Shown: one piece after another, positions 183 to 3,100 of the stretch
Layout: each line of letters begins with the position of its first letter
Position numbering within the stretch: the first letter of the stretch is position 1
Assembly (NCBI RefSeq): GCF_052425735.1
Contig: NC_135768.1
Span: forward strand, 19,406,001-19,470,000
Direction: 5' to 3'
Length of the DNA: 64,000 nt
Source: Oculina patagonica
Lineage: Eukaryota
Position numbers and translations under genes: made by a program
Notes under the pieces: generated by a model
The model's database searches: none
What the model saw: only the letters and a program-made list of their open reading frames with translations
Told to the model about the DNA's origin: nothing

Positions 183-3100
183 TCACTTTTCAGTGAACTG
201 GGACGAGACCCATGCCAGTCCCCACTTCAAGTTAGTCAGCACGAATTTCAACGCTTTGGTCCATTGCTCCTCGGAGTTGAACTGAATCCTAACAAGGGAC
301 AAAACAAGTTTCGAGTAGTTAGGAATTATCAATTGAAAAATGGCAACCTAAATTGTCACTTCAACATTTCTTTCTAAATTCAGGCCTTTACTTTGGAATC
401 ATGTTTATCCGTGAAATGGTTAACTTACTTTATAGAAAATGCTCCGCCAGATCCGCTTGAATCGTGGATTTTGCCTTTTTCCATCCTACGGAAAAACGCA
501 AGAAAAAAGAATGTAAGGAAACATAACTGACTGAATGTTGGAAAACTTGAACGTTTGAGTGGATTAAGAACCCTGGTTATAGAAAAAAAGGGGGGGGGAA
601 TGTACACGTGATTTTTTCCCTTCGTGTGTCACCAGTCACGTGCTGCCGTATAAATTGCACGTGCTGATGTTGGCTATTTGATTGGCTAAGACATTTGGGA
701 AGCCAACAAAATGACGAAAAAAGTTGTTAGAAGTAGAAGCACTTTGGTGCTCTTCTATACGTAATCTTGCTTTTCGTTTTGCTTCAGTTCGTTTTCTTAC
801 AACGAGAGCGTGGAAACAAAAACTAAACCGCAGAAATTACTGACAAAACCCTGTTGAGTAATTTTAACGCGCGCGCTCCGCCGAGACGACATTTTCAAGG
901 CAAAAAATAGAGATGTTTGCCGTAGAATCTTTAGCGGACAGAAAACTAGTGAAAGTAGCCAATGCTTGCGCGCGCTTTAGACCTGGCAAAAGGAGGAAAC
1001 ATTTTTTTTTAAACACTTTTAGCGCGCGCATTTTTCCCCATTTTTTTTCCTTTTTCCCCCCCGGGAATTTTTTTTTTCCCCGTTTTTTTTTTTTTTCAAA
1101 AAAAAAATTTTTGGTTTTTCCCCCCGGGGAAGGAAAAAAAATCTAGGAAATTTAAGGCCGGGAAAAACGAGAACACATTGTTGCGGACACATTGTTGCTC
1201 GTAATGTTTCTTGGGTGAGCAAACGAGCTGCCCAAACCGGAGAACATTTGTTTGCGGACACAAAACGTTTTCTGAAAAAATAAGAAACATATTTTGTCTC
1301 AGGCACAAATTTTGTGTCCGCAACAAATGTTGCGCGCGGGCGAAAACAGGGAAACCTCGCGTCCGCAACAATGTGTCCTAAGTCCCCGGTTTAAGCTCAA
1401 CTATTTATTTTATAACAACCTTAAAATTGGATAATTACCTCCTAATCAGTTATGTCTTGAACTAAATTTTGCCGCTGTTTTTTTTTTTTCAAAAGCGAGC
1501 TGCGTTTTCAATTCGAAATTTCCTTCGTTTTTTATTTGTTTTCGTCTACTTTCTCCCCCCCTTGTATATAAAAAAAGACAACATATCTATACTTTTCTTT
1601 GATTTATTCAAAGTTTTCTTATGTCACAATCCATTTTGAGTTTAAAAAATCCAGTCAATTTCGCTTACTAAATCTCATTCAGCGTGTCAAGTCCTTTGTT
1701 CTCTTTGAAAAGCCTTATAGAAATCTAAAGTCACAGTCTTGTATGTATAGAAGGAAAAAGAAATAAATCACAGTCCTTTATACAGTCAAATGTTCACTTG
1801 CGGGCGGATCGTCGCCTTCTGCGAACGCGGCGTGCTTTCTTGGGTGCGGCTCTCCTGTTTGCCTTGCGCGCACCTCTGTAGTATTTCCTTCCAGAGCGCC
1901 TCTTGGCCGCGGACTTTCCTCGTCGGGCCTTGCGTCTCCTGGTAGTTTTCTTTGCTTTTCTTGCCTTAGCCTTCTTGGTGGCTTTCTTCACCGATTTCCG
2001 GCCAGGGCTCTTTGACTTTGATCGGGAACGAGATCGCGATCGGGAGCGTGTCTTCGAAGCCGACCTTGATCGTGATCGGGATTTTGAACGGGATCGGGAT
2101 CGGGATCGGGACTTGGCTCGAAGTTTGAACGCGTTGCCGCTTTTGATAAGAGCTTTTGATTTCACTCCTCGTGCCAATGCAACTCTTACTTGCAGAGGTG
2201 AAACAGTTTTCGTTCCACGCTGCGACGAAAGGTAGGCAAAAATTGCTTTCGCACTTGATCCATTGCGGTCTTGCAAGGCGGCGATGGCATTGAAAACTGC
2301 CTGGCTTTTAAGAGGTCTTCTTTTCCCTCCCTTTCTGCGGGCGGCCTTCTTTCTCTTGGCTACGACTGCTTTCTTAGCACCTCGGCGGGTTTTGGCCATT
2401 TTGGAACTGTTCTGGCGAATTTTTTAACGGAGCTAAAAAATGTACGTCTGGACAGTTCGGAGACTAGCGGCAAATGATTTAATTCCTAGGGTACACGTCA
2501 TAGACATAATTGCCAATTATCTAATTAACGCAAGATTGTAAACAAGTCATTAGGCTAATTTAATGAATAATTAATGACGTAGTGGCTACGTCACAAATGC
2601 ACATTACCAATTAGGAAAGTTTGTAAACAAGTCGAGAATTTTTGAAACAAATATTTAGTGACGTATCCGTGACGTCAAGAATGGTCATTACCAAATTGTC
2701 ACGCAATCTTCTACTCGGCGTCTGCGTGACGCTCGATACTAATCCTACAATAAACGGAATAAAAACTACGGCAAATTCTATTTTAACCCTAAATAATTCT
2801 GCATTGAACACACGCAACATCTCTTAGATCGTATAAAACCTTACTGTTATATAAAAAGTAAAACCTAGTCTGAAGGGAAATTTGTTGGAAAATTTACCAT
2901 CAGCCTAGAACTATGACTGAAAATATTTATATTTCACGTAACTGAGAAGAAAACCTTCGAAATTCTTTTTTTTTTCTCAATTTTTTTCCAAGCTCTCACC
3001 TGTATGGAAGGCAAAATCTTTTATCCACTTTCTCTACCGCTTCTTTAAACTAAAGAGAGAAATATATAAAAAAAAATAGACAGGGTCTTACAGCTCTTAA

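Follow-up and report, generated by a model that had tools for sequence, protein, structure and literature searches.

The window analysed here, a 64,000-nucleotide stretch of the stony coral Oculina patagonica (RefSeq assembly GCF_052425735.1, contig NC_135768.1, positions 19,406,001 to 19,470,000), carries on its minus strand the autophagy gene Beclin-1 and, within one intron of this gene and on the same strand, an intronless gene for a basic protein derived from linker histone H1 (Table 1). Beclin-1 runs from a start codon at 13070 to a TGA stop at 185-183. Its translated exons yield an APG6_N match of 88.8 bits in Pfam, followed by successive parts of the APG6 (BARA) domain along the gene. 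The whole predicted transcription unit of the H1-like gene is contained in a single host intron. The analysis favours a functional single-exon gene for a nuclear basic protein of the protamine-like (PL) type, most likely a component of developing sperm chromatin.

Table 1. Features of the Beclin-1 locus and of the gene nested in it (positions in the window; UTR, untranslated region; ORF, open reading frame).
Feature	Position	Strand	Basis or remark
Beclin-1 (BECN1/ATG6), host gene	183..13070	minus	Pfam BH3, APG6_N and APG6 on exon translations
Beclin-1 exon directly upstream of nested gene	3000..3049	minus	ends in GT donor
Beclin-1 host intron, 2514 bp	486..2999	minus	GT donor after 3000, AG acceptor before 485
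Conserved proximal promoter (predicted) and 5′UTR of nested gene	2400..2730	minus	five-taxon alignment
Intronless coding sequence of H1-derived protamine-like protein, 201 aa + TGA	1794..2399	minus	ORF list, PF00538, orthologues
N-terminal basic tail, residues 1-30 (MAKTRR...; R 23%, K 27%)	2310..2399	minus	composition
H15/linker-histone winged helix, residues 31-95	2115..2309	minus	Pfam, AlphaFold2, invariant columns
RS/KS repeat tract, residues 96-132, ending KSPGRK (SPKK-like, conserved)	2004..2114	minus	composition
Arg/Lys-rich C-terminal tail, residues 133-201 (R 32%, K 25%), ending RRRRRSARK	1797..2003	minus	composition
Conserved 3′UTR (~190 nt), ending at poly(A) signal AATAAA (1608-1603)	1603..1793	minus	alignment
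Beclin-1 penultimate coding exon	429..485	minus	AG acceptor, GTAAGT donor
Beclin-1 last coding exon (end of BARA domain)	183..288	minus	APG6 positions 148-179/179, E 1e-9

An earlier note, made from the sequence of the stretch alone, had placed an intact intronless ORF for a 201-residue protein with an H1 winged helix between two BECN1 exons. This is confirmed by the uninterrupted frame from ATG to TGA, by Pfam and by the splice sites of the host. Residues 32-87 match Linker_histone (PF00538) with a score of 33.1 bits (curated cutoff 22.4), which places the protein in the linker-histone H1/H5 superfamily, and PF00538 is the precomputed Pfam domain of all close homologues. The protein as a whole is extremely basic (R 22.9%, K 18.4%, S 14.4%, A 15.9%, and a single acidic residue, D+E 0.5%), with a pI of about 12, R+K of 41% and an R/K ratio of 1.24. 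The RS/KS tract consists of 46% serine and 32% arginine, and part of it is encoded by a 6-bp tandem array at 2068-2111 found by Tandem Repeats Finder. On the opposite strand this tract is mirrored by a 110-residue ORF (1903-2235, plus strand) with DRDRDRE repeats, which was rejected as a gene and regarded as a mirror artefact of the RS repeat.

In the winged helix 20 columns are invariant across seven family members, and an AlphaFold2 model built from these seven predicts residues ~31-90 to fold into helices at 32-45, 50-59 and 68-76 with a short hairpin (the wing) at pLDDT 80-91. The RS tract is predicted to be disordered, and the tails are modelled as low-confidence helices. A Foldseek search with the full-length model returned a list headed by the winged helices of H5, H1.x, Hho1p and KAT6A/B, all at E≥0.68, weak values put down to the use of the full-length model. 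The predicted fold is thus consistent with that of H1/H5 without being an independent proof of it.

The nested gene appears to be equipped with a promoter and a 3′ end of its own. Over about 330 bp preceding the ATG, five taxa show 63-89% identity, as compared with 38-76% in the distal part of the same intron, and this conservation persists despite near-saturated synonymous sites between most of the five. The block contains TGACGT sites resembling the cAMP response element (CRE) at 2495, 2575, 2588 and 2659 and a full palindrome, TGACGTCA, at 2670-2677. One third of the TGACGT/ACGTCA sites in the 64-kb window (6/18) fall in this block, a 60-fold local excess over the window mean of 0.10 per 360 bp. 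The TGACGT site some 100 nt ahead of the ATG is retained in every coral orthologue whose upstream sequence reaches far enough, and TGACGTCA is found at about −120 in the corresponding genes of Actinia and of the coral contig L008. Downstream, AATAAA follows the stop codon by 186 nt, and identity to three corals is 72-83% up to this signal and 41-57% beyond it. A histone 3′ stem-loop was not found, either by Rfam at E≤10 in window positions 1-4000 or by a tolerant pattern search near the gene. The nested unit therefore looks like a promoter, a short 5′UTR, a single coding exon, a 190-nt 3′UTR and a poly(A) signal; with AATAAA and no stem-loop, its mRNA would be of the replication-independent, polyadenylated type. 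Start, stop, predicted promoter and poly(A) signal lie together in one intron, flanked on either side by host exons in independent assemblies, as would be expected of an independent nested gene.

Purifying selection has acted on this gene. Intact orthologues are present in at least six other assemblies, and dN/dS (Nei-Gojobori) is 0.15-0.29 in every comparison with unsaturated dS, in domain and tails alike. Low dN/dS together with the conserved upstream region and 3′UTR argues for a separate gene under selection. The family proteins P0001-P0006 share the winged helix and, among other features, the RRRRSARK end; an RS tract of variable length is found in all but P0006, and the MAKxRR start in P0001-P0005 but not in the more divergent P0006. 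When read in the standard code, the orthologues of L001, L003 and L005 end in ...SARK directly followed by TGA and that of L002 has its stop after ...RRRRSSRK, while the L008 gene ends differently. The database proteins P0001 (L003), P0002 (L005) and P0004 (L001) overrun the real TGA (...SARKW...). These longer versions are read-through artefacts in which a metagenome gene caller took TGA as a sense codon. The start of P0005 (L002) was called 18 codons too late, and the true upstream start restores MAKARR. RS words took over a word-indexed search with the full protein (8000 candidates scored, 6 matches), the same search with the winged helix only gave 25 candidates and 1 match, and a further profile search added few. 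No source-named coral protein of the family was found in these homologue searches, which proves little.

The nesting is itself conserved. All minus-strand peptides of window positions 1-14500 were compared by tblastn with the contigs encoding homologues, a comparison with other cnidarian genomes that the earlier note had proposed, and the same nesting was found in the identical intron of four stony corals (L001, L002, L003 and L005, of which L002 is a 1.3-Mb contig and L003 a Tara Pacific metagenome scaffold). In all four an exon encoding FKEAVE(K/R) is followed after 556-600 bp by the H1-like gene in the same orientation, then by the MEKGKI...GGAFSIK exon and the last Beclin exon, the latter present where the contig extends that far (L003 stops just short). 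The exon at 3000-3049 is 94-100% identical in these assemblies, and exon 429-485 is kept downstream of the nested gene in the four and in L008. The contig of L008, a fifth stony coral, begins just upstream of the H1-like gene and continues through the last two Beclin exons, so that the exon-gene-exon order is partly visible there, as it is in L006.

The arrangement extends to a sea anemone. The relative in Actinia tenebrosa (P0013, RefSeq XP_031572941.1), named 'protamine-like protein', is encoded on the same strand inside the annotated span of the gene for a 448-residue Beclin (GCA_009602425.1), with the FDQAMVAFLDCLQQ exon on one side and the last exon on the other, and NCBI correctly annotates two separate genes. 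The two small Beclin exons beside the Actinia gene fall in N runs, leaving the exact intron unconfirmed in this species. No Beclin exons were found near the genes of distant Arg-rich relatives (P0029/P0155 in L009 and L010, P0074 in L011), which are uninformative on the date of the nesting. With the same intron occupied in four more assemblies of stony corals and the relative in Actinia situated within Beclin, the insertion is ancient and predates the split between stony corals and sea anemones, which is of the order of half a billion years old.

This age bears on several propositions of the earlier note. It had described a retro-inserted or translocated gene within an autophagy gene, and the same-strand nesting in a Beclin-1 intron stands, whereas a recent insertion finds no support, given the same intron in other assemblies and the gene's own conserved promoter. 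Hallmarks of retroposition were discarded as evidence of origin, the nesting being too old and H1-family genes being generally intronless anyway. The concern that exons 183-485 might not be contiguous with 3000-13070 is answered by the exon order, which is repeated in independent assemblies, and misassembly is very unlikely. The suggestion that such a gene is easily fused to or lost from automated gene models meets mixed signs: NCBI has both genes right in Actinia, and the lack of a source-named coral protein in the homologue searches proves little. The same-strand orientation, held to be unusual since nested genes were said to be usually antisense to their hosts, is less odd than thought because Drosophila same-strand nested genes are mostly single-exon (72.5%) and testis-biased (58% peak in testis; PMC3814207). 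The coral gene resembles these in its single exon, fast evolution, presumed male-germline expression and residence in the intron of a broadly expressed host, but the coral pair, common to stony corals and a sea anemone, appears far older than typical nested pairs.

PL proteins are defined by a globular H1-type core and a disordered tail with a protamine-like Arg/Lys-rich stretch, and are said to derive from the replication-independent H5/H1.0-type lineage of H1 (PMC13148410). The coral protein has this architecture, with a winged helix followed by a 69-residue C-terminal tail, and all features of PL membership that can be read from a sequence are present. The PL-type class given in the earlier note is thus supported: the H1 winged helix fits it, as do the excess of R over K, a 3′ end of poly(A) type and the name that RefSeq gives to the relative in Actinia. 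The role in sperm is a probable extension of these. A canonical replication-dependent H1 is not indicated by the R/K ratio of 1.24, the missing stem-loop and the lone position in a Beclin-1 intron. Nor is a true (P-type) protamine, given 201 residues, a folded winged helix and lysine nearly as abundant as arginine, nor an SR splicing factor, as no RNA recognition motif (RRM) was found in the Pfam scan.

An exhaustive search with the domain profile among 1.8 billion representatives recovered the family at E<1e-29, then a gap, with 362 proteins in total at E≤1e-3; so few matches and such a gap in score mark the domain as well diverged from ordinary H1. Lys-rich H1s of canonical type retrieved by the same profile contain 2-5% arginine and 25-32% lysine. 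Among the best non-family matches were P0007 (746 residues), P0010 (486 residues), P0014 and P0011, 'hypothetical proteins' from JGI/IMG with 2-7 tandem H15 domains. In the globular-domain phylogeny called for in the earlier note (141 sequences), the coral proteins share a group with XP_031572941.1 of Actinia and further Arg-rich proteins, and the Lys-rich H1s fall elsewhere, if with weak support (SH-aLRT 83-88). By features, the nearest clusters in the ESM Atlas are 'Histone H5' (0.89), an arthropod 'protamine-like' cluster and mollusc H15 proteins; since no score reaches 0.9, they are to be taken as leads only.

The likeness to PL-I type proteins of bivalves and to sea-anemone sperm H1s, compared by description only, lies in the H15 winged helix, the disordered Arg+Lys tails (41% here) and the replication-independent gene type. 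The coral protein differs from them in the long RS/KS repeat between domain and C-terminal tail, a feature not found described for PL proteins in the literature searched. With Actinia XP_031572941.1 it shares a short basic N-terminal tail, the winged helix, an Arg-rich C-terminal tail ending in poly-Arg and the same-strand position inside Beclin, although identity is about 42% over the domain only and the Actinia protein lacks the RS tract. Canonical somatic H1 and H1.0/H5 have a homologous winged helix and the same tail-domain-tail layout. Unlike canonical H1, the coral protein contains more arginine than lysine and has a shorter wing (...KSGNAFKL...; the Pfam match ends at profile position 62/74), and its gene has a poly(A) signal, no stem-loop and a place outside any histone cluster. 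Vertebrate protamines are similar in the Arg-rich tail, the RS/SR motifs of phosphorylation type and the CRE-type elements near the gene start. They are, however, small, without a globular domain and without sequence homology to the coral protein, so that the link to CREM and SRPK is one of analogy only.

If these features are taken together, the protein would replace or supplement histones in developing sperm and condense the chromatin. As in H1/H5, the winged helix would dock on nucleosomes or DNA, and the tails, rich in Arg and Lys, would neutralise DNA phosphates and drive compaction. Kinases of the SRPK and CDK types may phosphorylate the RS tract and the KSPGRK site, which would keep the newly made protein soluble and time its deposition. 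Dephosphorylation would follow in mature sperm, and re-phosphorylation possibly serves removal after fertilisation. SRPK1 has been called a protamine kinase (PMC13327716). Transcription would take place in male germ cells from the CRE-rich intronic promoter, possibly through a bZIP factor of the CREB/ATF/CREM type, by analogy with mammals, in which CREM/ACT bind the CREs of protamine and transition-protein promoters (PMC8753101). From the polyadenylated, replication-independent mRNA, translation may be timed by the conserved 3′UTR. Kinase action, the bZIP factor reading the promoter and translational control are all proposals from motif content. Anthozoans, in distinction from hydrozoans, carry PL-type sperm proteins (PMC5011920), and anthozoan sperm has been reported to contain H1-like/PL proteins (Rocchini et al. 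1995 and 1996, as cited in PMC5011920 and PMC11607694). In sea anemones, specialised H1 proteins are stated to dominate sperm chromatin (Rocchini et al. 1995/1996, as cited in PMC11607694). Sperm-specific expression of the nested gene is suggested by this analogy and by its sequence.

Several points weigh against the assignment to sperm chromatin. It depends on sequence character and analogy, and the PL class is set by features and an automatic RefSeq name and not by the sequences of characterised anemone sperm H1s. Many promoters outside the germline also contain CRE-type sites. The Foldseek match of the full-length model to H1/H5 is not significant, and the domain tree, built from 66 columns, is unrooted and poorly supported. 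Furthermore, the Actinia relative lacks the RS tract and L008 has almost none of it, from which it follows that the tract is not essential to the family.

Foremost among the other explanations is a replication-independent linker-histone variant of somatic or embryonic chromatin, such as an H1.0/H5-like protein or an oocyte or cleavage-stage H1, which we consider unlikely yet deserving of serious attention. A winged helix and a poly(A) signal without a stem-loop would suit any replication-independent H1, and 'Histone H5' as nearest ESM Atlas cluster is a lead in the same direction. In contrast, an arginine content of 23% in excess of lysine, the terminal poly-Arg and the RS tract fit such a variant poorly, being typical of sperm basic proteins, whereas somatic and oocyte H1s are Lys-rich or more acidic. 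The naming of the Actinia relative as protamine-like also speaks for the sperm.

It is highly improbable that Beclin-1 uses the ORF as an alternative terminal exon, with a truncated isoform or a fusion of Beclin and H1 as the product, even though the ORF lies on the same strand inside an intron and one AG upstream of the ATG (...AACAG/TTCC...) would by chance keep the frame with the phase-2 exon end at 3000. The frame 2423-1797 has a stop codon 8 codons before the ATG, and the 330 bp upstream are promoter-like and have neither branch-site context nor a polypyrimidine tract. The L002 gene has an in-frame TAG immediately ahead of its ATG, and a fusion is therefore not conserved; the MAKxRR start is conserved, and NCBI holds two separate gene models in Actinia. 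Equally slight is the chance of an RS-domain nuclear protein acting on RNA, associated with speckles or the nucleolus and with the winged helix incidental. Its RS tract does align weakly with the RS domain of SRSF1 (E 0.0014) and, below the Pfam cutoff, with the SR-rich linker of coronavirus nucleocapsid, but both matches are of low complexity, no RRM or other RNA-binding domain was found by Pfam, and the RS tract is lineage-specific while the conserved parts are the winged helix and the basic tails. A decaying retrocopy or chance ORF from a simple repeat, which an intronless, intronic coding sequence partly made of a 6-bp tandem repeat might bring to mind, is refuted by intact orthologues, start and end motifs shared in most corals, dN/dS far below 1 and conserved flanking regulatory DNA.

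A bolder version of the proposal, that of a sperm-chromatin gene, may be put forward with considerable doubt. It holds that the nesting is functional, with mutual regulation of Beclin-1 and the sperm gene kept since before the split of corals and anemones, and that bZIP control through TGACGTCA of sperm genes for chromatin condensation predates the split of cnidarians and bilaterians. Transcription of Beclin-1 through the CRE-rich internal promoter would then silence the sperm protein in somatic cells, and in spermatids full-length Beclin-1 would be dampened or cut short by the strong internal promoter and its poly(A) site.

The surroundings of the nested gene show a few further peculiarities. 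A dispersed repeat occurs in two copies of opposite orientation, at window positions 1149-1400 (host intron, downstream of the nested gene) and 3376-3663 (preceding Beclin intron), the latter copy also being present in L003. Its arms at 1149-1178 and 3601-3630 (30 nt) are inverted and 87% complementary. A mobile element carrying the H1-like gene was considered and rejected, as the inverted arms belong to dispersed repeat copies in two different introns. Positions 1020-1150 of the host intron consist of odd low-complexity alternating runs of G, A, C and T (GGGGAAAAA...CCCGGGGGG...), which could be a degenerate repeat or a polishing artefact. Another Beclin-1 intron contains a run of 135 N at 4461-4595. 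Just upstream of the Beclin-1 start, positions 13468-13797 show peptide-level conservation with L002 3-167.

The class to which the nested gene is assigned, H1-derived sperm nuclear basic proteins of anthozoans, is already known. What is new is modest: a nesting in Beclin-1 that is deeply conserved, an RS tract specific to corals and a promoter rich in CRE-like sites. Searches of the literature for a PL gene sequence from corals or anemones, for coral spermatogenesis and protamine, and for a gene nested in Beclin returned nothing specific, and no sequence-level description of H1-like sperm proteins of stony corals was found in the literature searched. For annotation, the ORF deserves a gene call of its own and should neither be merged with Beclin-1 models nor dropped from them. 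The conserved same-strand nesting in an essential autophagy gene offers a clean case for the study of transcriptional interference, and the conserved promoter, about 330 bp long, might serve as a male-germline driver in cnidarian transgenesis. Anthozoan H1-like sperm proteins, known biochemically since the 1990s, are here given a concrete candidate gene with its regulatory DNA, which would provide a handle on coral sperm chromatin and bears on fertility and sperm cryopreservation.

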